NCBI GenBank assembly: GCA_965603825.1
Contig: CBFDEM010000063.1
Span: 496,227-560,226, forward strand
DNA: 64,000 nucleotides
Origin: Blepharisma stoltei ATCC 30299
Taxonomy: Eukaryota; Protista; Ciliophora
Direction of reading: 5' to 3'
Every line of letters starts with the position of its first letter. Within the stretch, counting starts at the first letter, position 1. Shown piece by piece: positions 24,635 to 64,000 of this stretch. Both the position numbers and the translations under genes were made by a program. The notes below the pieces were generated by a model. The model made no database searches and had not been told where the DNA came from. It saw only the letters and a list, made by a program, of their open reading frames with translations.

Positions 24635-25456
24635 ATGTCTAGAAAGTATAATCAAGCATATGAAAACAATATTGATTCCTTAAACTTTCTTCTATCCAGA
24701 GAGCGTGAAAAGCCACCCCTCGGTGACTTTCTCTCAGGCAACGACATACAAGCCTCCATGCGTGACAAGCTTGTCCAATGGATGTTCAAGCTGTCCCAAG
24801 ACCTATCTCTTCAGCTCGAAACGACCCAATTTGCTATATCTTTGATGGATTTATTTCTTTCTAAGGTAAAAACTGCAAAAAGTGTAATCCAGCTGCTTGG
24901 GGTGGTCTGTTTAATGATTTCCACAAAATTTAATGAAAATAGGCTATTCACATTGCAAGACGCGTTATTCCATACTGGAAAGCAATATAAAATTAATGAA
25001 GTACAGTTGACAGAAGTCTTTATTTTACACAAACTTGAATGGAGACTTAATATAACGACAGCCTCGGAGCTGGTGAGGAGGCTTTTTATACTTACAGGGC
25101 TTGAAAATGATTTTTCAAGAATTTATGAAAGAATTGACGCTTTTACGTGTGTCTGCTATGGGAATTATGAGCTTTCGCAGTACCGTGTGCTAGAAATTGC
25201 TATTGCAAGCTCAATATGTACCCTTGAGCAGTTTAATCAGATTAATTTTAGAAATCAGTGGGTGCAGCTGTTATTTAATCAGGGTATTTTAGATGTGGGG
25301 AGCGTTGATTTGTGTAAGAGGACGCTACTGAGGGTGCTTTATTCACAGACATCACCTTATGATGCACATAAGCTTAGTCCGATTACGCTGGATAGCATCG
25401 AAACTTATATAAGGAGAAATAATGATGAAAAATCTCGTTTAATTAACAATGCATAA
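24635..25456 (+). CDS. cyclin (cyclin-box protein)
   Basis: MRDKLVQWM, AISLMDLFLS, QLLGVVCLMISTKFNE, E..IL.KLEWRL. Confidence 0.93.
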   Translation: MSRKYNQAYENNIDSLNFLLSREREKPPLGDFLSGNDIQASMRDKLVQWMFKLSQDLSLQLETTQFAISLMDLFLSKVKTAKSVIQLLGVVCLMISTKFNENRLFTLQDALFHTGKQYKINEVQLTEVFILHKLEWRLNITTASELVRRLFILTGLENDFSRIYERIDAFTCVCYGNYELSQYRVLEIAIASSICTLEQFNQINFRNQWVQLLFNQGILDVGSVDLCKRTLLRVLYSQTSPYDAHKLSPITLDSIETYIRRNNDEKSRLINNA

Positions 25457-25799
25457 TTAGTTAACGCGTTTTATATGATTTAGATAAAACTGCAAAAATT
25501 ATTCAGGATTTATAAAAACCAAATGGTAAAATTTAAAATCATAAATCCTCCTGAAAAACTTGGAGATTTCAAAACAATTAATTTAATTATCAATATTAAG
25601 GCTGAGAAAAAATATACTATATCATTTTTATGTCAAATTTTTCCAAAACTTAAAATATTTCAAATATCTATTTAAGATTTCCTTTAACAAAATCCACATA
25701 TTTCTTCCGAATTATGCTTTCCCTTATCACCTATCCCAATACTTGCCATATCAGAATAATGCCATCATGCTTACGTAATTAGATAAAAAAATCAAAAAT

Positions 25800-26876
25800 A
25801 TGAAACACTTCATCTGCAGAGCATTTGGAAAATACACAGTCAAAGCGCCTACAAATATCGCGCTTATCAAGTACTGGGGCAAGTCCAACGAAGACATAAA
25901 CCTCCCTCTCAACTCCTCAATAAGTTTGACTGTCGACATTGAACAATTTTTTACACAAACTACCATTGAATTAAATGATGAAAAAAACCAGCTTATCCTC
26001 AACAATGAGCCAGCTGAGATCACAGGAAGAATTTCTCGTGTGATTAACATGCTGAAGTCTCTGACAAAACCAGAAAATTTAGAAAAAAAAATAAAAATCG
26101 AGTCTTGCAATAATTTTCCGACTGCCGCGGGAATGGCAAGCTCAGCTTCTGGACTGGCAGCTCTGACCTTTGGACTGGCAAAAGCATATAAGGTAAATAT
26201 TAGTATGGAAGAATTGTCAGGAATCGCAAGACTTGGCTCTGGGAGCGCCTCACGCAGCTTTTTTGGCGGAATTGTCGAATGAAGTGCAGGTGACTCTCAT
26301 GAAAAAAGCATCGCAAGGCAGCTTTATGAAAATTCCCATTGGGACGAGTTAAGACTACTAGTAATATTAACTGATTTAGAAAAGAAAAAAATTTCCAGCA
26401 CAAATGCAATGAAATTAAACAGAAAAATGCTACTTGAAAGGGCCAATGAAAGAGTCCCAATTCGTATAGAAAACTTAAAAAAAGCTTTAGAAGCCAAAGA
26501 TTTTGAAAATTTAGCTAAAATTACTATGGAAGAAAGTGATGATTTGCATTATGTGATTGAGGCGGCTAATGTGAAATACCTGAATGCTAAAAGTGAAGAA
26601 ATTAAAAAACTTATCCATGGCTTTAATTCACAAGGAATCCGTGCTGCTTATACCTTTGACGCTGGCCCAAATCCTTTTATATTGACTAGGAAGCAGGATA
26701 TTAATGACTTAGTCAGTCATTTATTGATAAGCCTAAAATTAAGATCCCACAACGACTTAAAATTGCATGGGCAGCTGCCGAATGATCCTTTCCTATTTTT
26801 ACAAAGCAGTGCAACTATTCCAGTCTTTGGGATAATTGAAAGCAAAATATCAAGGACAGGGCCTATTTTACTTTAA
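25800..26876 (+). CDS. MVD: diphosphomevalonate decarboxylase
   Basis: NIALIKYWGK, NNFPTAAGMASSASG, ARLGSGSASRS, GGIVE-W(TGA 26280), KKKISST, AYTFDAGPN. Confidence 0.96.
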
Positions 26877-26900
26877 TTTATTAGAAATTTATGAAATAGG

Positions 26901-27649
26901 TTACTTATTTGTGGTATTAATAAATTTCCCTTTCATGATTTGCACCATCAGTTCTTTGTCCATAAATTCATAGTCTTTTGGAATGTAGAGCCTATGCCTT
27001 TCTTCTTGGTAATATTTTACCCATGGTTTATTTTTGGCATCGTCAGGGATTTCGAAATAGGATACTTCAGTAGGAAATAAATCGTCTTTCAGCCTTATAG
27101 AGTCTTCGTATTTTATAGGCGGAGTTAAAAAGTTAATAGGCATTGTATAAAAGTATTTTTTGCTTCTTCTTCCAAGCCAACTTAAATACCCAATATCTAT
27201 ATGAATTCCATCTCTATTAAGCTTTACTTCATGGATAGTAATTGATTGATGAGCCAAAATCGCCCAATTTCTCCACAGACTATACACCCCATAAAATAAG
27301 AACACAGGCAAACACAATGGCTCTTGATTAACTCTATTTGACAATTACATGGCCATGGATTCTTTGCTAAAAGAAAAAAACTTCCTATTGTTGTAGTGAG
27401 ACGTCCTAAGAACCTCCCCATTGTTTTCATAAATGTAGGCTGATAGGAGTACACAAGGAGGCTTCCACTTTCATCAAATTCAAGAATTTTAGATGGGCTG
27501 TAAACATTGACTCTATTTTGAAGTTACTGAGAAGGCTTTTCACGTAACGGTTTTGGCTCCCAAGGGTTTACAAGTTTTTTTGCAGGGGATTTGACTGTTT
27601 TCTTTGTATTGACTAAGGACCCAAAGTTCTTTAATACAGCTTTGAGCAT
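26901..27649 (-). CDS. small membrane protein with basic N-terminus (possibly mitochondrial); two tiny introns
   Basis: ATG 27649 MLKAVLKNFGSLV...; 15-nt intron 27513-27527 removes an in-frame TAA. A second intron near 27332-27348 is needed to reach the 3' ORF, with a frame ambiguity (see findings). Confidence 0.7.
27513..27527 (-). other. 15-nt spliceosomal intron GTAACTTCAAAATAG
   Basis: GT..TAG, A at position 10, removes an in-frame stop. Confidence 0.85.
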
Positions 27650-27700
27650 ATTTAATCAAATAGGGTAGATATTTGTATACTTTTCATATACAAAATTAAA

Positions 27701-28513
27701 ATGGGATACCAAGCCCCTAGTCAGCTTTCATGCGAAATCAGCCTTTACATTCCTACTTATTTTCAGAACACAACCTTAATAGCTCATCTAAACAGAAAAA
27801 ATATCCCATATATCGTATTTTCTTCAGAAAAACACCACCCTAATTCTATTTTATTCTATCGGCATACTATTTCTTCCAAGGTAAACTCAGAAGAATTTTT
27901 AGTAAATAATAAAAAAGTCCTTGCGATATTATTAGAAGGCGATTTTAGTGACGAAAAAGAACTCCTGGAAGATTATTTATCAATTTACTATAAAAATAAA
28001 ATCCGAGTAATTTTGGTTCTGCAAGGGCTAAAAGAGGCCTTAGAAACAGTCCAATTTACACAGAGAAAAGGGTTCACCCATGAAACTTATGCAGAATGGG
28101 TAGCCCAAATGATGATAAAAGGGGTTGATTGTATAGAAACTGAGAATTTCCGAGATACTGCAGATTATTTAGAAAGGGTTATTAACACCTTAAATAATGG
28201 GCCATATAGACCTCTTCCTACTGTTTTTCATTTACAGTCTCGAAAGCTCTCAGTAAATCATAATATACCCAAATCTTCAGCTTTGTGAGCAAGTCAACTG
28301 ATAAATATTCCTGGAATTTCTGAAAGTAAGGCAAAATCCATTATTGATATGTACCCAACTTTAAGCTCGCTGATGGAAGCTTATGAAAATGAAGAAAAAT
28401 CAGAAGCAGAAAAGAAATTAATTTTGGCACAGATTGGGGAGAGAAAGGAGAAAAAAAATTCAAGCAAAATTTATAGGTTTTATACAAGTAAAAATCCTGA
28501 TGAAATTTTGTAA
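27701..28513 (+). CDS. EME1: EME1/MMS4-like crossover-junction endonuclease subunit (ERCC4-like + HhH)
   Basis: With TGA=W the C-terminus reads LWASQLINIPGISESKAKSIIDMYPTLSSLMEAY...SSKIYRFYTSKNPDEIL, the EME1-type tail. TAA 28511-28513. Confidence 0.8.
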
Positions 28514-29955: not shown

Positions 29956-32109
29956 ATGAAAATCGCTATCTTACTTATACTCAGCTTAACTGCGTTTGGG
30001 ATAAGAAATGATGTGTACAAGTCAATGTTCTTACAGCAAGACAGTGCTACAACTTCCACGACTAGTTCTGTGTCATCAGCGGAAGCATCTGCATATGTAG
30101 AAGAGGCAGCATCTGAAGTTAGTTCAACAACTGAAGAAGCAAGTGAAGAAGCAGAAACATACGTTGAGAGTGGAGAAGCAGAAGCTGATGCTGAAGAAGC
30201 TGAATCTACTGCTGAAGAAGCAGCTGAAACAACTGAAGAAGCAGCTGAAGAAGTTGAAGAAGAAGCTGAAACAGCTGAAGAAGAATCTAGTGAATCAACT
30301 GAATCAACTGAATCAACTGAAACAACTGAAACAACTGAAACAACTGAAACAACTGAAACAACTGAAACTACCTTTTTCATTCAAGAAGAAATTTTAAGCT
30401 ACTCTGAAGCCAAAGCTGCTGCTCAAGAATATGTTGAAAGTGGAGAAGCCGAAAGCGACGCTTATGCAGCTGAAGCAACTGTTGATTATTACTTTGAATC
30501 TGGAGAAGCTGAATCCGATGCTGAAGCAACAGAAGCAGATGCTGACCAATATGTTGAATCAGGAGAAGCATCAGCCGATGCAGCAAAAGTTGAAGAAGCC
30601 GCTGAAGAGTATGTTGAGAGTGGAGAAGCAGCACAAGATGCCGAAAAAGCAGACCAAGCTAAAGATGAAGCTGCTGAAGATGCTGGTGAAGAAGCTGCAG
30701 AATATGTTGAATCAGGAGAAGCTGAAGCAGACGCTCAAGAAGCTGAAGCTGCCGCAGAAGCTGCAGAAGCTGATGCCGAAGCTGATGCTGAAGCTGAAGA
30801 TGAAACTGCAACATCTTTCGTACAACTTGAAGAAATTTACAGTTACTCTGAACTTAAAGCTGCCGCTCAAGAATACGTAGAATCAGGACAAGCTGAAAGC
30901 GATGCTCAAACAGCCTCAGTCGAAGCTGAAGCATATGTTGAATCTGGAGAAGCAGAAGCCGATGCTGAAGCCGCTGAAGCTGATGCCGACCAATATGTCG
31001 AATCAGGACAAGCATCTGCCGATGCAGCACAAGCTGAAGAAGCCGCTGAAGAATACGTTGAAAGCGGACAAGCAGCAGAAGATGCCGAAAAAGCTGATGA
31101 AGCCCACGATGAAGCAGTTGAAGCCGCTGGCGACGAAGCTGCAGAATACGTTGAATCAGGAGAAGCTGAAGCAGACGCTCAAGAAGCTGAAGCTGCCGCA
31201 GAAGCTGCAGAAGCTGATGCTGAAGCTGAAGATGAAGCTGCAACCTCTTTCGTACAACTTGAAGAAATTTACAGCTACTCTGAACTTAAAGCTGCCGCTC
31301 AAGAATACGTAGAATCTGGACAAGCTGAAAGCGATGCTCAAACTGCCTCAGTCGAAGCTGAAGCATATGTTGAATCTGGAGAAGCAGAAGCTGATGCTGA
31401 AGCCGCCGAAGCTGATGCCGACCAATATGTCGAATCAGGACAAGCCTCAGCCGATGCAGCACAAGCTGAAGAAGCCGCTGAAGAATACGTTGAAAGCGGA
31501 CAAGCAGCAGAAGATGCCGAAAAAGTTGATGAAGCCTACGATGAAGCAGTTGAAGCCGCTGGCGACGAAGCTGCAGAATACGTTGAATCAGGAGAAGCTG
31601 AAGCAGACGCTCAAGAAGCTGAAGCTGCCGCAGAAGCTGCAGAAGCTGATGCTGAAGCTGAAGATGAAGCAACCACAACTCTCTTCTTACAAACAGAAGA
31701 AGAAATTTACAGTTACTCTGAGATTAAAGCCGCAGTTCAAGATTACATAGGATCAGGACAAGCTGAAACTGATGCTCAGGAAGCTTCAGTTGCAATTCAA
31801 AGCTATGTTGAATCTGGAGAAGCCGAAGCTGACTATGAAGCAGCTGAAGCTGATGCTGAAGCCTATGTCTCATCAGGACAAGCAGAATCAGACGCAGCAG
31901 AGGCTGAGGCAGCTGCTGAGGAGTACGTAGAATCTGGACAAGCAGCTGAAGATGCTGAAAAAATCGATGATGCAGAGGATGAAGCAGCTAAAGAAGCAGC
32001 AAAAGACACTTATGAATACGTTGATAGTGGAGAAGCAGAAGCAGATGCTGAGGCAGCAGAAGAAGCAGCTGAGGAGGTAGAAGAAGATATCGAAGATGAA
32101 ACAGAATAA
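29956..32109 (+). CDS. secreted, extremely acidic (E/A/D) repeat polyprotein with 4 ~144-aa modules
   Basis: Signal peptide MKIAILLILSLTAFG; modules start at F-[ILV]-Q-(L/T)EEI(Y/L)SYSE; internal YVESG(E/Q)A subrepeats. Confidence 0.92.
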   Translation: MKIAILLILSLTAFGIRNDVYKSMFLQQDSATTSTTSSVSSAEASAYVEEAASEVSSTTEEASEEAETYVESGEAEADAEEAESTAEEAAETTEEAAEEVEEEAETAEEESSESTESTESTETTETTETTETTETTETTFFIQEEILSYSEAKAAAQEYVESGEAESDAYAAEATVDYYFESGEAESDAEATEADADQYVESGEASADAAKVEEAAEEYVESGEAAQDAEKADQAKDEAAEDAGEEAAEYVESGEAEADAQEAEAAAEAAEADAEADAEAEDETATSFVQLEEIYSYSELKAAAQEYVESGQAESDAQTASVEAEAYVESGEAEADAEAAEADADQYVESGQASADAAQAEEAAEEYVESGQAAEDAEKADEAHDEAVEAAGDEAAEYVESGEAEADAQEAEAAAEAAEADAEAEDEAATSFVQLEEIYSYSELKAAAQEYVESGQAESDAQTASVEAEAYVESGEAEADAEAAEADADQYVESGQASADAAQAEEAAEEYVESGQAAEDAEKVDEAYDEAVEAAGDEAAEYVESGEAEADAQEAEAAAEAAEADAEAEDEATTTLFLQTEEEIYSYSEIKAAVQDYIGSGQAETDAQEASVAIQSYVESGEAEADYEAAEADAEAYVSSGQAESDAAEAEAAAEEYVESGQAAEDAEKIDDAEDEAAKEAAKDTYEYVDSGEAEADAEAAEEAAEEVEEDIEDETE
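30292..30370 (+). repeat. 9-bp coding minisatellite (GAAWCAACT)n encoding EST/ETT
   Basis: Directly visible tandem repeat. Confidence 0.9.
30373..32100 (+). repeat. ~432-bp coding tandem repeat, 4 units; units 2 and 3 near-identical
   Basis: Motif starts at 30373, 30814, 31246, 31681 (spacings 441, 432, 435). Confidence 0.92.
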
Positions 32110-32351
32110 ATGGAAAAACCTAGAAGATAATTAATATAATTTTACTTTATTTCAAATCCATAGCTTTAAATTAATAAATTCTAGTCAGAAATTGTAAATA
32201 AAAATTTTTAAGCTTAATAAATTAATTAATTATTTGATATTAAGTTATTCTTTAGTAATAATTAAATTTTTGGAATAACAGTATAATAAGAATCCTTAAG
32301 ATTTACTAGTTTTCTAGTTAATTTTACCCTTATTTTTAAACTTTTCGTTAA

Positions 32352-33557
32352 TTAAAAGCTGAGAAATGCTAATCCAAGTCCTATCAACGACAGATAAACT
32401 CCACTATCATCATCCATCTTTGCATTAGATAATGCAAAGCCTAATCTTTGGTTATCCATGTCAAAATTGATATAGTATCTTCTAATGAACGAGTCTCCTA
32501 AAAGCCAATAATCATCTTCTTGTGGAAAGATAATTAATAAATATTTTCCCTTGACTTTATACATATAGTCGTGTGGTGCTAATTCCAAAGTAATTCCTGC
32601 TGCTTGGAAATAGATGCTTGGGAGTTCTGAAGAGATTTTATCGCAAAAGATAAGTCCTTCACCATCTTGCTTGCATCCAAAAGTTTTAGAGCTTGTAAGA
32701 AATGCAGAAATCGCAGTTACATCTTTAAGAGGTGCATATATGAAACTTGTTCCTGTATCAATAATCCCAGTAATAGCAATATCAAGAATGGTTGTTCCAA
32801 AAAGAGTTTGGGTGAAAGAAATTTCCCAAAAATCAGGAGGATTTTTGGCTACTAAGTCGACATAAATAAAAGCAGTCTGATTAGAGTATTTTGCTAGATC
32901 ATACCCTTCAACCATAAGGTTTGACTGTGGTGAGCTTCCTTCATAGTTTAAGAAAAATGCGAAAGTCCTTGATGTGATTTTCTTTTGGGTTTGTAATACC
33001 GTCATCAGTGAAGGATATCCCTGTCCCAAATCGTCAAATGCAAAACCAATGAGGCCATCTGGAGCGAACCCTGTATCGTTTGTTTCCTTGGTAGCCATTA
33101 AAAAGGCGTATTGAGTAGCATTTAGAACTGTGGAGTCACCAATTCCAACGACATCCGAAACCATTTCTCCTGAAGTTGAGCCAATCCCATATTCAATATC
33201 CATGGTCGCATCTAAATCTTTGAAAGTTGAGGACTTTGTAGGGTCATAAGTTTGATCACATTTGTGGCAATCTTCGCAGCCTTTTTTAACTACCCACAAT
33301 GTGGTGCTTCCAGTGTCGTATTGACAGGTGAATTTTTTGGCTGGAGTGCCAATAGAAATAACTCCATAATAAATTGTCTAAGTAGAAAATACATCGTCTC
33401 CATTTTTCAACATTGATGAGGTGCCAGCTTCTAATAAATTCTTTGCCCTGACTTTTTGGAAATGCTCCCAATGTTCTTCGTTTGATTTAAAGTGAGTGTC
33501 AAGGTCAATAGAAATCGATGCAAAAACTGCTGGGAGAATAAAATAGAGGAATTGCAT
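32352..33557 (-). CDS. pepsin-family (A1) aspartic protease with signal peptide and GPI-like tail; one 15-nt intron
   Basis: MQFLYFILPAVFA signal; after splicing YYGVISIGTP...YDTGSTTLWV and IIDTGTS (two DTG), WLLGDSFIRRYY. Confidence 0.95.
33378..33392 (-). other. 15-nt spliceosomal intron GTATTTTCTACTTAG
   Basis: Its TAG is the apparent stop between propeptide and mature domain; A at position 10. Confidence 0.9.
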
Positions 33558-35482
33558 TTTATTATGGTGAAATTTTAGGCTTGATGACATGGTTACAAAA
33601 ATGACGATAAAAATCTAACAATTTTAATTTGAAGAAAAAAGCTGATAATTGGAATGGGAATGATATATTGAATAAAACTAAAAAGTTTGTGAGGAATAAG
33701 AAAATAGAGAGGAGAAAAAATAGATATTATTTTAGAAAAATTCTTTGGCACAGTTTTTTTGGTTTCAACTAAATCGAAAAAAAATGCTTGAAAGAAATAG
33801 AAGATAAATGCAATTATAAAAGAAAATTCTGTCCAATTTGCATACATAATTGAAGGTTTTCAATCCATTTTCAACACTTTATATTTTATTAATTTTATTC
33901 ACCATTTACTCAAAGTCAAATAAGAATTCTAAAGTTTTAATTTTCATAGATTATAATTGCTATTATTTTTTATCAATTTTGAAATAAAGTTAAAGCGATT
34001 TTGCTATAAATTGCAGAAATTTGTTAGATTTTAGGAGTGAAAATGATTAAATTTCAAAGAATGAAGGCAATTAGATAATATTTCTTATTATAAGGATTAA
34101 AAGGTTAGATTAATTATTAAAATAGATATAGTGAGGAGCCAAAAAACAGATTAATATAAAATCATTATGCGCCTCTCTGCTAAATATCCTAGATTTTTTA
34201 TATAAATAATTAAAAAACCAAGAAAAATTTGAAAATACAAAAATAATTTATCATAAGAAATTTCTAAGTAACTCTGCAAGGATAGGAGATTTAGGGAGGG
34301 AAACTCTCTATTGTTTGTCGATTTCAAGTCATAAAACCAACTAGAGAAGGTTCATTTGCCAACCAGTCAGTCTCCTGCTCTTACAGGAAATTCTTATATT
34401 TAAAGAGAGTTCGTTTTCATTGGCTGCGCCTACCTCATTGATGCCCTGCAGAGTTTCAGAGATTATCATTCTCAAGCCTGGCCGAAATACCCTGCTTTTT
34501 CTAGATATGCTGTCTAAGATCTCCTAAATTTCCAATCCACGCGCAACCTAAGTTTCACCAAACTCCCTTCCAATGCGAGAACGCCTACATAAACTGGCTA
34601 TTATCAACTGAATAGACTCCCATTTTGCCATCAAACTTACATCCCCTTTTTCAGATCATCTTGAGGAAGAATTCAACAGCTTTTCCATTCAGTGCTAGTT
34701 ACAGTAGCAACTTAGGCAAGTAAGTCACCCTGTCTCATGTCTAGCATCCATCGAGTTTGGTGCTCTGGCAAAAAAGTTGAATTTATCTGCCCAAAAAGCC
34801 AGAACCAAAACCAACAGCTTTCGTTCTTGCGTCTCTCTTCTCAAGACTGCTAATAACATGGTTAAAAACCACTAAAAATCATGCTCGGCGTATATAAGGA
34901 CCTATGTCATAGAGGGACAGGCCATTCATCTTCAGATTTATTTATATAAAAATGCAAAAATAATTGAATTTTTTAATAGTTAAATACATGCACTACAGGA
35001 TCCTCAATCTATAGCAAAATCTATACTGACAATATCAGTATTTTCTACAAGCTCTTCTTATAAGTTAGAAAGACGACTGAAGCAACAAAAAAATTCAGCA
35101 GCTATAGCTAATAAATTCCAACGCTTAAAACATAATTTCACGAAAAGGGTTGCAGTCCGTTTAAAATCGTTCTCAGTAATCTGCATTATTTTATCATCAA
35201 AAGAGAACCACTTATCATCTAGAATTTGGGTAATGCCTTTATTAGTATTACTGGAGTCCCAATACTGTTTCCCCTCTTTTCCTTTCACTTGCTAGTAAAC
35301 AATAATAGAAAAATGCTTGATGTGCATTAGTTCTTCCTTAATTTTCTTTATATTAATTTAAAGAAAAGGATTATTGGTGAATTATTTTTGGATAGAGCTC
35401 TCTTAATGCATCCTGACGAACACTATGCTAACATTTCTATATAATAAAATTTACTGAGAGAAAAGATTCTAAATCGTTGTTA

Positions 35483-61029: not shown

Positions 61030-61506
61030 AATTTAAAATTTATAGTAGGGGACAATAAGTTAGTCACAAAGAGGTTGGCAAAATGGCGGATTCCAAAGAT
61101 CAAGCAATCGATTTGACTATAAAAATATTAAATGAAAGATGCTTAGTAGTCCTACAATTGGTAACTTTGATAATTTTTTAATTAAGAATTTTGGTCATTT
61201 GAACCTGATTCCAAAAGCTCTTCTATGCACTCCCTTGATTCAACTAGCATGGCTAGAGGGTGCTAGGACTACTCCCTTCTACTTGCTATTTTTTGACTAC
61301 TCTTTTGTGAAAAATCTAAGAATTCCCTTTAAACAGCTCCATAAAAATTCTATCAATGGCATGAGCCTTAAAAGGAAGCTTTAAATGCTTCCCGAAGTGC
61401 AGTTCACAGGATAAAGTTAAAGAAGAGGTGTACAGGCATGTATATATAATTATTATAATGACTGCTTATTAAAAACAAATTATTATTTAAATCTGCATTT
61501 TGTGGA

Positions 61507-64000
61507 GTGTTAGGGTGTTAGGGTGTTAGGGTGTTAGGGTGTTAGGGGTGTTAGGGTGTTAGGGTGTTAGGTGTTAGGGTGTTAGGGTGTTAGGGTGTTA
61601 GGGTGTTAGGGTGTTAGGGTGTTAGGGTGTTAGGGTGTTAGGGTGTTAGGGTGTTAGGGTGTTAGGGTGTTAGGGTGTTAGGGTGTTAGGGTGTTAGGGT
61701 GTTAGGGTGTTAGGGTGTTAGGGTGTTAGGGTGTTAGGGTGTTAGGGTGTTAGGGTGTTAGGGTGTTAGGGTGTTAGGGTGTTAGGGTGTTAGGGTGTTA
61801 GGGTGTTAGGGGTGTTAGGGTGTTAGGGTGTTAGGGTGTTAGGGTGTTAGGGGTGTTAGGGTGTTAGGGTGTTAGGGTGTTAGGGTGTTAGGGTGTTAGG
61901 GTGTTAGGGTGTTAGGGTGTTAGGGTGTTAGGGGTGTTAGGGGTGTTAGGGTGTTAGGGTGTTAGGGTGTTAGGGTGTTAGGGTGTTAGGGGTGTTAGGG
62001 TGTTAGGGTGTTAGGGTGTTAGGGGTGTTAGGGTGTTAGGTGTTAGGGTGTTAGGGTGTTAGGGTGTTAGGGTGTTAGGGTGTTAGGGTGTTAGGGTGTT
62101 AGGGTGTTAGGGTGTTAGGGTGTTAGGTGGTGTTAGGGTGTTAGGGTGTTAGGGTGTTAGGGTGTTAGGGTGTTAGGGTGTTAGGGTGTTAGGGTGTTAG
62201 GGTGTTAGGGTGTTAGGGTGTTAGGGTGTTAGGGTGTTAGGGTGTTAGGGGTGTTAGGGTGTTAGGGTGTTAGGGTGTTAGGGTGTTAGGGTGTTAGGGT
62301 GTTAGGGTGTTAGGGTGTTAGGGTGTTAGGGTGTTAGGGTGTTAGGGTGTTAGGGTGTTAGGGTGTTAGGGTGTTAGGGTGTTAGGGTGTTAGGGTGTTA
62401 GGGTGTTAGGGTGTTAGGGTGTTAGGGTGTTAGGGTGTTAGGGTGTTAGGGTGTTAGGGTGTTAGGGTGTTAGGGTGTTAGGGTGTTAGGGTGTTAGGGT
62501 GTTAGGGTGTTAGGGTGTTAGGGTGTTAGGGTGTTAGGGTGTTAGGGTGTTAGGGTGTTAGGGTGTTAGGGTGTTAGGGTGTTAGGGTGTTAGGGTGTTA
62601 GGGTGTTAGGGTGTTAGGGTGTTAGGGTGTTAGGGTGTTAGGGTGTTAGGGTGTTAGGGTGTTAGGGTGTTAGGGTGTTAGGGTGTTAGGGTGTTAGGGT
62701 GTTAGGGTGTTAGGGTGTTAGGGTGTTAGGGTGTTAGGGTGTTAGGGTGTTAGGGTGTTAGGGTGTTAGGGGTGTTAGGGTGTTAGGGTGTTAGGGTGTT
62801 AGGGTGTTAGGGTGTTAGGGTGTTAGGGTGTTAGGGTGTTAGGGTGTTAGGGTGTTAGGGTGTTAGGGTGTTAGGGTGTTAGGGTGTTAGGGTGTTAGGG
62901 TGTTAGGGTGTTAGGGTGTTAGGGGGTTGGGTGTTAGGGTGTTAGGGTGTTAGGGTGTTAGGGTGTTAGGGTGTTAGGGGTGTTAGGGTGTTAGGGTGTT
63001 AGGGTGTTAGGGTGTTAGGGTGTTAGGGTGTTAGGGTGTTAGGGTGTTAGGGTGTTAGGGTGTTAGGGTGTTAGGGTGTTAGGGTGTAGGGTGTTAGGGT
63101 GTTAGGGTGTTAGGGTGTTAGGGTGTTAGGGTGTTAGGGTGTTAGGGTGTTAGGGTGTTAGGGTGTTAGGGTGTTAGGGTGTTAGGGTGTTAGGGTGTTA
63201 GGGTGTTAGGGTGTTAGGGTGTTAGGGTGTTAGGGTGTTAGGGTGTTAGGGTGTTAGGGTGTTAGGGTGTTAGGGTGTTAGGGTGTTAGGGTGTTAGGGT
63301 GTTAGGGTGTTAGGGTGTTAGGGTGTTAGGGTGTTAGGGTGTTAGGGTGTTAGGGTGTTAGGGTGTTAGGGTGTTAGGGTGTTAGGGTGTTAGGGTGTTA
63401 GGGTGTTAGGGTGTTGGGTGTTAGGGTGTTAGGGTGTTAGGGTGTTAGGGTGTTAGGGTGTTAGGGTGTGTTAGGGTGTTAGGGTGTTAGGGTGTTAGGG
63501 TGTTAGGGTGTTAGGGGTGTTAGGGTGTTAGGGGTGTTAGGGTGTTAGGGTGTGTAGGGTGTTAGGGGTGTTAGGGTGTTAGGGTGTTAGGGTGTTAGGG
63601 TGTTAGGGTGTTAGGGTGTTAGGGTGTTAGGGTGTTAGGGTGTTAGGGGAGTTAGGGTGTTAGGGTGTAGGGTGTTAGGGTGTTAGGGTGTTAGGGTGTT
63701 AGGGTGTTAGGGTGTTAGGGTGTTAGGGTGTTAGGGTGTTAGGGTGTTAGGGTGTTAGGGTGTTAGGGTGTTAGGGTGTTAGGGTGTTAGGGTGTTAGGG
63801 TGTGTAGGGTGTTAGGGTGTTAGGGGTTGGGTTAGGGTGTTAGGGTGTTAGGGTGTTAGGGTGTTAGGGTGTTAGGGTGTTAGGTGTTAGGGTGTTAGGG
63901 TGTTAGGGTGTTAGGGTGTTAGGGTGTTAGGGTGTTGTGGGTGTTAGGGTGTTAGGGGGTGGTAGGGTGTTAGGGTTGTTAGGGTGTTGGGTGTGGGTGT
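61507..64000 (+). repeat. telomere (TGTTAGGG)n, i.e. (CCCTAACA)n
   Basis: ~2.5 kb of 8-mer repeat running to the window end, G-rich strand toward the end; the known heterotrich (Stentor/Blepharisma) unit. Confidence 0.99.

Follow-up and report, generated by a model that had tools for sequence, protein, structure and literature searches.

A 64,000-nucleotide stretch of the Blepharisma stoltei ATCC 30299 genome (contig CBFDEM010000063.1, positions 496,227 to 560,226, forward strand; hereafter the window) contains a gene for an acidic signal-peptide protein whose body is divided by F-[LIV]-Q motifs, and it is plausible, indeed moderately favoured by the evidence set out here, that this protein is a polyprotein processed at these motifs. 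The open reading frame (ORF, 29956-32109) runs without an internal stop and translates into 717 amino acids (aa), among them 191 Ala, 184 Glu, 55 Asp and 14 Lys, with Ala and Glu together making up 52%. The original prediction described the body as essentially free of C, W, P, R and N, and this holds: Cys, Trp and Pro are absent, and the sole Arg and the sole Asn both lie within the leader. An S/T/E-rich spacer (116 aa, aa 28-143, counted up to the end of the second motif) is followed by four modules of 138-147 aa, each comprising five Y-V-E-S-G-[EQ]-A-E-x-D units at spacings of 20, 20, 20 and 31 aa. A protein search and a DNA-pattern search of the B. stoltei genome identified this single locus. 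The gene is organized as follows:

29956..32109, plus strand: acidic, predicted secreted repeat-protein gene, 717 aa; single copy, intronless, transcribed
29956..30003, plus strand: predicted signal peptide, ~aa 1-16, assigned by hydropathy and by eye; the only hydrophobic stretch of the protein
30025..30036, plus strand: motif 1, (S)MFLQ, aa 24-27 (S codon at 30022), at the end of a putative ~10-aa propeptide past the signal peptide
30037..30372, plus strand: acidic spacer rich in S/T/E, aa 28-139, containing a single YVESG unit and a short repeat of the TET type
30373..30384, plus strand: motif 2, (T)FFIQ, aa 140-143, the same tetrapeptide as in the plasmepsin X Rh1 substrate peptide
30385..30813, plus strand: module 1, five YVESG units spaced 20-20-20-31 aa
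30814..30825, plus strand: motif 3, SFVQ, aa 287-290, the same as in the plasmepsin X EBA181 and Rh4 peptides
30826..31245, plus strand: module 2, 97% DNA identity to module 3
31246..31257, plus strand: motif 4, SFVQ, aa 431-434
31258..31680, plus strand: module 3
31681..31692, plus strand: motif 5, LFLQ, aa 576-579
31693..32106, plus strand: module 4, which has diverged furthest (DNA identity of 69-75% to modules 1-3)

The protein has five copies of F-[LIV]-Q, starting at aa 25, 141, 288, 432 and 577, and the motifs sit only at unit borders, the remainder of the protein being nearly devoid of bulky hydrophobic residues. Five of the eight Phe residues in the whole protein are the Phe of a motif, and a sixth is the first Phe of FFIQ. 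SMFLQ just past the leader and TFFIQ, SFVQ, SFVQ and LFLQ ahead of the modules are indeed found where the original prediction had placed them. In 100,000 shuffles of the body, no shuffled sequence contained more than two F[LIV]Q, compared with the five copies seen; for the non-duplicated part of the protein (aa 18-143), which holds two copies, two were never obtained in 100,000 shuffles. Since the modules are duplicates of one another (DNA identity of 97% between modules 2 and 3, 83-85% for module 1 and 69-75% for module 4), the five sites are not independent, and the predicted recurrence of the motif has to be narrowed: all five sites are present but go back to only two independent origins, the post-leader site (MFLQ) and the module-border site. 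To judge from their sequences, the border motifs represent one ancestral site that was kept while its flanks changed (TFFIQ, SFVQ, LFLQ). The anticipated division into four similar subunits likewise needs amending. Four modules exist, but cutting would yield five pieces because aa 28-143 constitute a spacer and no module. Each of the four predicted module subunits would measure ~15 kDa, carry 48-52 acidic versus 2-4 basic residues and probably be unfolded at neutral pH without cations.

Support for a polyprotein with processing sites is indirect and comes from tetrapeptide identity to plasmepsin X substrates, from unrelated ORFs, from the propeptides of A1 aspartic proteases and from an SFVQ site retained in a related organism. 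Plasmepsin X substrate peptides contain SFIQ, FFIQ, NFLQ, SFVQ and SFLE (PMC7146544), plasmepsin X cleaves after Phe (PMC10128010), and substrates of Toxoplasma ASP3 contain SFVE, SFTE and SSVQ (PMC5595437). FFIQ and SFVQ of the acidic protein are letter-for-letter identical to tested plasmepsin X peptide motifs, and a tetrapeptide of the x-F-[LIV]-[QE] class within a signal-peptide protein, a feature of substrates of plasmepsin IX (PMIX), plasmepsin X (PMX) and ASP3, is present. Known substrates of these enzymes (Rh1, Rh2, Rh4, Rh5, EBA181, the SUB1 prodomain, ROP1, ROP13 and MIC3) are likewise secretory proproteins with S/F/N-F-[LIV]-[QE]. They are, however, adhesins or enzymes in which one to three sites remove a prodomain, whereas in the free-living ciliate five predicted sites would partition an acidic repeat protein into pieces of nearly equal size.

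The same motif recurs in comparable positions elsewhere. Three unrelated small B. stoltei signal-peptide ORFs (L065, L066 and L067) feature S-F-[LI]-Q 7-11 residues past the leader, and two of them have a second motif 9-12 aa further on. In the propeptides of a conserved clade of protist A1 proteases (P0013-P0132, the homologues of L020:1252-2475, itself a member of this clade), F-[LIVM]-[QE] occurs in 42 of 102 sequences versus 7.5 expected; de-replication leaves 17 of 45 versus 3.3 expected at 60% identity and 7 of 30 versus 1.7 at 55% identity, among sequences that remain related to one another. Within this clade the motif is placed directly past the signal peptide or just ahead of the mature domain, often twice or three times.

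The small ORFs have features of their own. One (L065:2369-2692, plus strand; C60:295368) encodes 107 aa with SFIQ and SYLQ past the leader and ends in two near-identical amphipathic helical segments; it looks like a prepropeptide that would release membrane-active or signalling peptides. Another (L067:5838-6074, minus strand; C22:26073) encodes 78 aa in which SFLQ, SFIQ and VFIE lie 12-23 aa apart; should cleavage take place at the motif, this small ORF would amount to a polyprotein made up of short peptides. The third (L066:5650-6000, minus strand; C38:360499), a predicted secreted ORF of 116 aa, has SFLQ-Q directly past the leader followed by an Ala/Glu/Ser-rich stretch, a layout resembling the start of the acidic protein; no clear paralogue of it was found. 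Separately, a 138-aa open frame at C12:354919-355266 (minus strand), which weakly matches aa 1-116 of the acidic protein (30%, E 2e-4), is possibly a small secreted acidic relative.

Transcription was assessed by comparing RNA contigs, as opposed to raw reads, over 31230-33800, a region chosen beforehand to avoid the duplication of modules 2 and 3. Contigs of one run span modules 3 and 4 and end before the gap that separates the gene from its downstream neighbour, an A1 aspartic protease gene; both genes are transcribed in this run, on separate contigs with depths of about 1000 and 270, values not usable for expression ranking. The acidic gene is also present in RNA runs of three related organisms, for which the best-supported differences were listed. 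In related organism B, 17 of 470 bases of module 4 differ, eight of the ten listed changes being synonymous; the end of one contig translates as T-A-T-S-F-V-Q, with a Phe codon that differs only synonymously. An assembly artefact is ruled out by the appearance of the module variants in RNA contigs and in relatives.

Several observations weigh against F-x-Q as a cleavage code. The substrates of ASP3 follow no obvious or strict consensus (PMC5595437), and the three small ORFs were selected by the motif itself. A genome-wide search for a start codon, hydrophobic codons and the motif returned 87 matches versus 89 for a scrambled-order control, a reversed-pattern control being unfair; there is no excess, and the motif is therefore not a bulk feature of the B. 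stoltei secretome, any enrichment in such DNA-pattern counts being lost in noise. Both Blepharisma members of the conserved A1 clade have F-L-S and F-L-P in their own propeptides, not F-x-Q/E, a PDB search with L020 at E≤1e-40 did not return plasmepsin X, and no homologue in word, HMMER or ESM Atlas searches ties the acidic protein to any extrusome protein. Within the genome-wide set, only the subset judged by eye to be in frame and signal-peptide-like, with ~4 motif matches versus 0-1 in the control, points to enrichment.

Alternatively, the protein might stay uncut, as a polyanionic component of a coat, of mucus or of a cyst wall, with F-x-Q serving as a hydrophobic sticker or sorting signal (for aggregation, receptor binding or module docking). 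Such a role would suit motifs that are the only strongly hydrophobic patches and each precede a conserved, likewise aromatic segment, (L)EEIYSYSE, and tandem duplication by itself puts any motif at unit borders. It fits less well with the independent copy directly past the signal peptide, the typical place of a propeptide end, with the same placement in unrelated secreted ORFs and protease propeptides, and with tetrapeptides that match tested protease sites, so that an uncut protein seems rather unlikely. Cutting at or near the sites might also be the work of a non-aspartic enzyme, such as a subtilisin or a cysteine cathepsin, or occur unspecifically after secretion or in lysosomes, in which case the plasmepsin X match would be convergent. 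Pepsin-type and other proteases favour Phe-hydrophobic bonds, S-phi-x-E sites were initially ascribed to the subtilisin SUB2, and Tetrahymena co-expresses cysteine peptidases and carboxypeptidases with its Grl genes; moreover, orthology to PMX, ASP3 or Cth3 is established for no Blepharisma protease. Among alveolates, however, the maturases known to act on this class of motif are aspartic, and we consider non-aspartic or unspecific cutting improbable.

The explanation that we favour, if narrowly when taken as a whole, is that the gene product is a proprotein of the regulated secretory pathway. Once the signal peptide is gone, an aspartic protease with PMIX/PMX/ASP3-like specificity, acting in a post-Golgi compartment, would cleave the protein at each of its five x-F-[LIV]-Q motifs. 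Cleavage would release a spacer of ~12 kDa together with four polyanionic subunits of ~15 kDa, in which about every third residue is Asp or Glu. With Ca2+ or at low pH, these subunits would condense or fold, either to form the matrix of a secretory granule or extrusome or to build an extracellular coat. The anatomy of the sequence, its transcription, the non-random occurrence of the motifs, their identity to known sites and the clade of the protease are shown directly; that the protein is secreted, cleaved by this class of enzyme, able to bind Ca2+ and deposited in such a structure is what we infer. By analogy with the Tetrahymena Grl proproteins, whose cleavage depends on the aspartyl cathepsin Cth3 (PMC4142616), the most economical function would be that of a secretory matrix or coat condensed by Ca2+ or pH. 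Like the acidic protein, Grl proteins and the TMP proteins of Paramecium trichocysts are acidic ciliate proteins with a signal peptide and predicted helical propensity, and Grl and TMP proteins mature by proteolysis. They form multigene families of ~350-400 aa with coiled-coil heptads, whereas the acidic protein is single-copy, 717 aa long, composed of four tandem modules of 20-aa YVESG repeats and devoid of Leu/Ile heptads. The Tetrahymena gene CTH3 was identified through co-expression and not through linkage. Since no Grl/TMP homology was detected in word, HMMER, ESM Atlas or Pfam searches and the gene has no family of paralogues, the protein does not appear to be a Grl/TMP member; it would rather work like these acidic proproteins, equipped with PMX/ASP3-type sites.

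As to the cutting enzyme, a member of the conserved protist A1 clade encoded elsewhere in the genome (e.g., C24:452033 or C25:140517) would be more likely than the adjacent protease, which has a hydrophobic tail. The C24 and C25 genes are candidate maturases by conservation only, and the clade to which they belong may correspond, in free-living protists, to the self-processing maturases of the PMX/ASP3 type. No named ASP3, PMX or Cth3 sequence was among the top 120 homologues of L020, and a PMX-like character of L020 is unsupported by the PDB search at E≤1e-40. The intergenic region and the adjacent gene comprise the following features:

32110..32351, no strand: AT-rich gap of 242 bp between both stop codons, with no RNA contig depth at ~32090-32260
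32352..33557, minus strand: A1 aspartic protease, 396 aa, GenBank CAG9336078.1, carrying a signal peptide, a short prosegment, both catalytic motifs (DTGS and DTGT) and a hydrophobic tail at the C-terminus resembling a glycosylphosphatidylinositol (GPI) signal or a transmembrane (TM) segment; transcribed
33378..33392, minus strand: GT-AG intron of 15 nt containing an in-frame TAG; missing from the RNA contig, the annotated protein being 5 aa shorter than the read-through

The stretch of the gap without RNA depth is consistent with two separate transcripts. The neighbour, 100% identical to an annotated B. stoltei protein, is an A1 protease by sequence (PF00026, E 1e-46; catalytic DTGS and DTGT), and its in-frame TAG does not make it a pseudogene, as the codon lies inside the spliced intron. 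Searches with this protease used exon 2 as the reference at first and later the 396-aa record P0004. The description of the neighbour as a convergent, secreted A1 aspartic protease is borne out with respect to family, intactness, signal peptide and distance (242 bp, tail-to-tail). The hydrophobic tail, which it has in common with its closest paralogues, speaks against simple secretion: judged by eye, the enzyme is probably membrane-anchored through GPI or a TM segment. In this architecture (pepsin-family domain, both catalytic Asp motifs, signal peptide and hydrophobic C-terminal tail) it resembles the GPI/TM-tailed yapsins of fungi, a likeness of architecture alone with the anchor type assigned by eye; in contrast to yapsins, it belongs to a Blepharisma-expanded clade. 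Its relatives at E≤1e-30 are confined to seven B. stoltei paralogues, with which it shares 40-50% identity, and one soil/metagenome protein. In trees that contained no named PMX, ASP3 or Cth3 sequence, the protease falls into this tailed, Blepharisma-expanded clade, apart from a cathepsin-D-like clade and separated by 100%-support branches from the conserved clade with its B. stoltei, Stentor, Paramecium, Pseudomicrothorax and metagenome sequences. In a PDB search, plasmepsin X came last of 52 matches, with 77.6 bits versus 131 for cathepsin D. Tree and PDB search point, if indirectly, away from a place in the PMIX/PMX/ASP3/Cth3 maturase clade. The B. stoltei genome has 84 PF00026 matches, corresponding to ~75 A1 genes; many of these lie in tandem clusters (C13, C26, C36 and C20), and a large clade features C-terminal hydrophobic tails.

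The headline of the original prediction was that the two genes form a dedicated pair in which the adjacent tailed protease matures the acidic polyprotein, kept together and co-regulated. Adjacency and transcription in the same RNA run agree with such a pair, as do the entry of both predicted products into the secretory pathway and a loosely similar NLLE in the protease prosegment, and the chance that one named gene has an A1 neighbour is ~0.6% (2 x 75 / ~25,000 genes). However, the genome has ~75 A1 loci, and this pair was picked after the fact from among thousands of observations. A second case of linkage was not found: the 1.5-kb flanks of 30 other A1 loci contain no multi-motif secreted ORF, and the contigs of the three small motif ORFs (C22, C38 and C60) list no A1 match. 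Tail-to-tail genes, moreover, have no common promoter, and the protease belongs to the tailed, lineage-expanded clade and has plasmepsin X as its weakest PDB match. In the runs of the three relatives, the acidic gene is present and the protease is either represented by a single short contig of low depth or missing, a weak point since contigs show presence only; none of the contigs of relatives spans both genes. The pair, the part of the prediction that would have surprised most, is weakly supported and improbable, and the A1 protease is probably a chance neighbour of the acidic gene.

By sequence comparison, the acidic protein appears to have no homologue outside close relatives. A HMMER scan of 1.84 billion representatives returned three compositional or short-word look-alikes only, Pfam and the ESM Atlas gave no domain or feature match, and the exact sequence is not in the 15-billion collection; a word search was also blank but missed the protein itself, which makes it weak. 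Two uncharacterised large proteins with 20-residue Y/F-x-x-S/T-G repeats (P0001 and P0003) share the 20-aa period and the Y-V-x-S-G register at profile probabilities of 42% and 10%. They are not acidic and lack a signal peptide and F-x-Q borders, and were set aside as look-alikes with only the period in common. In AlphaFold models, helices follow one another in strings, interrupted at every SG and without confident packing (pTM scores of 0.30 and 0.19), and fold searches turned up no specific match. The Ala/acid alternation produces a moment stronger at 160-170 degrees than at 100, and a low-confidence ESM Atlas model resembles beta-helices; a Ca2+-templated beta-solenoid would also suit this alternation.

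The assembly analysed is the macronuclear genome (41.5 Mb, 64 contigs), described in the genome paper as 41 Mbp in 64 sequences with 25,711 genes, UGA encoding Trp and introns of 15-16 nt (PMC9942806). A long TGTTAGGG telomeric tract occupies positions 61500-64000 of the window, which places the acidic locus ~30 kb from the contig end. Upstream, at 24635-28513, lie a cyclin, a mevalonate-diphosphate-decarboxylase-like ORF (by eye) and an ERCC4-domain ORF, all housekeeping and nothing secretory.

The biology of ciliate extrusomes and that of apicomplexan rhoptries and micronemes have exocytic machinery in common; heterotrich secretory matrix proteins are, to our knowledge, essentially undescribed. 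A broader proposal, which we advance tentatively and regard as doubtful, traces the F-x-[Q/E] code of apicomplexan invasion-protein maturases back to a secretory code already present in the ancestor of alveolates or of a wider set of protists. A free-living heterotrich would have kept this code for dividing polyproteins of a new class, polyanionic and built of 20-aa repeats, into the subunits of a matrix, and a membrane-anchored aspartic protease encoded next to the substrate might take part. With five predicted sites in one abundant-looking, Lys/Arg-poor substrate, and with new N-termini that can be predicted exactly, the acidic protein makes a proprotein-cleavage code shared by ciliates and apicomplexans directly testable. 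If such a code is indeed ancestral, Blepharisma would offer a free-living organism in which to trace how PMX/ASP3 specificity arose as well as a new self-assembling, Ca2+-dependent biomaterial.

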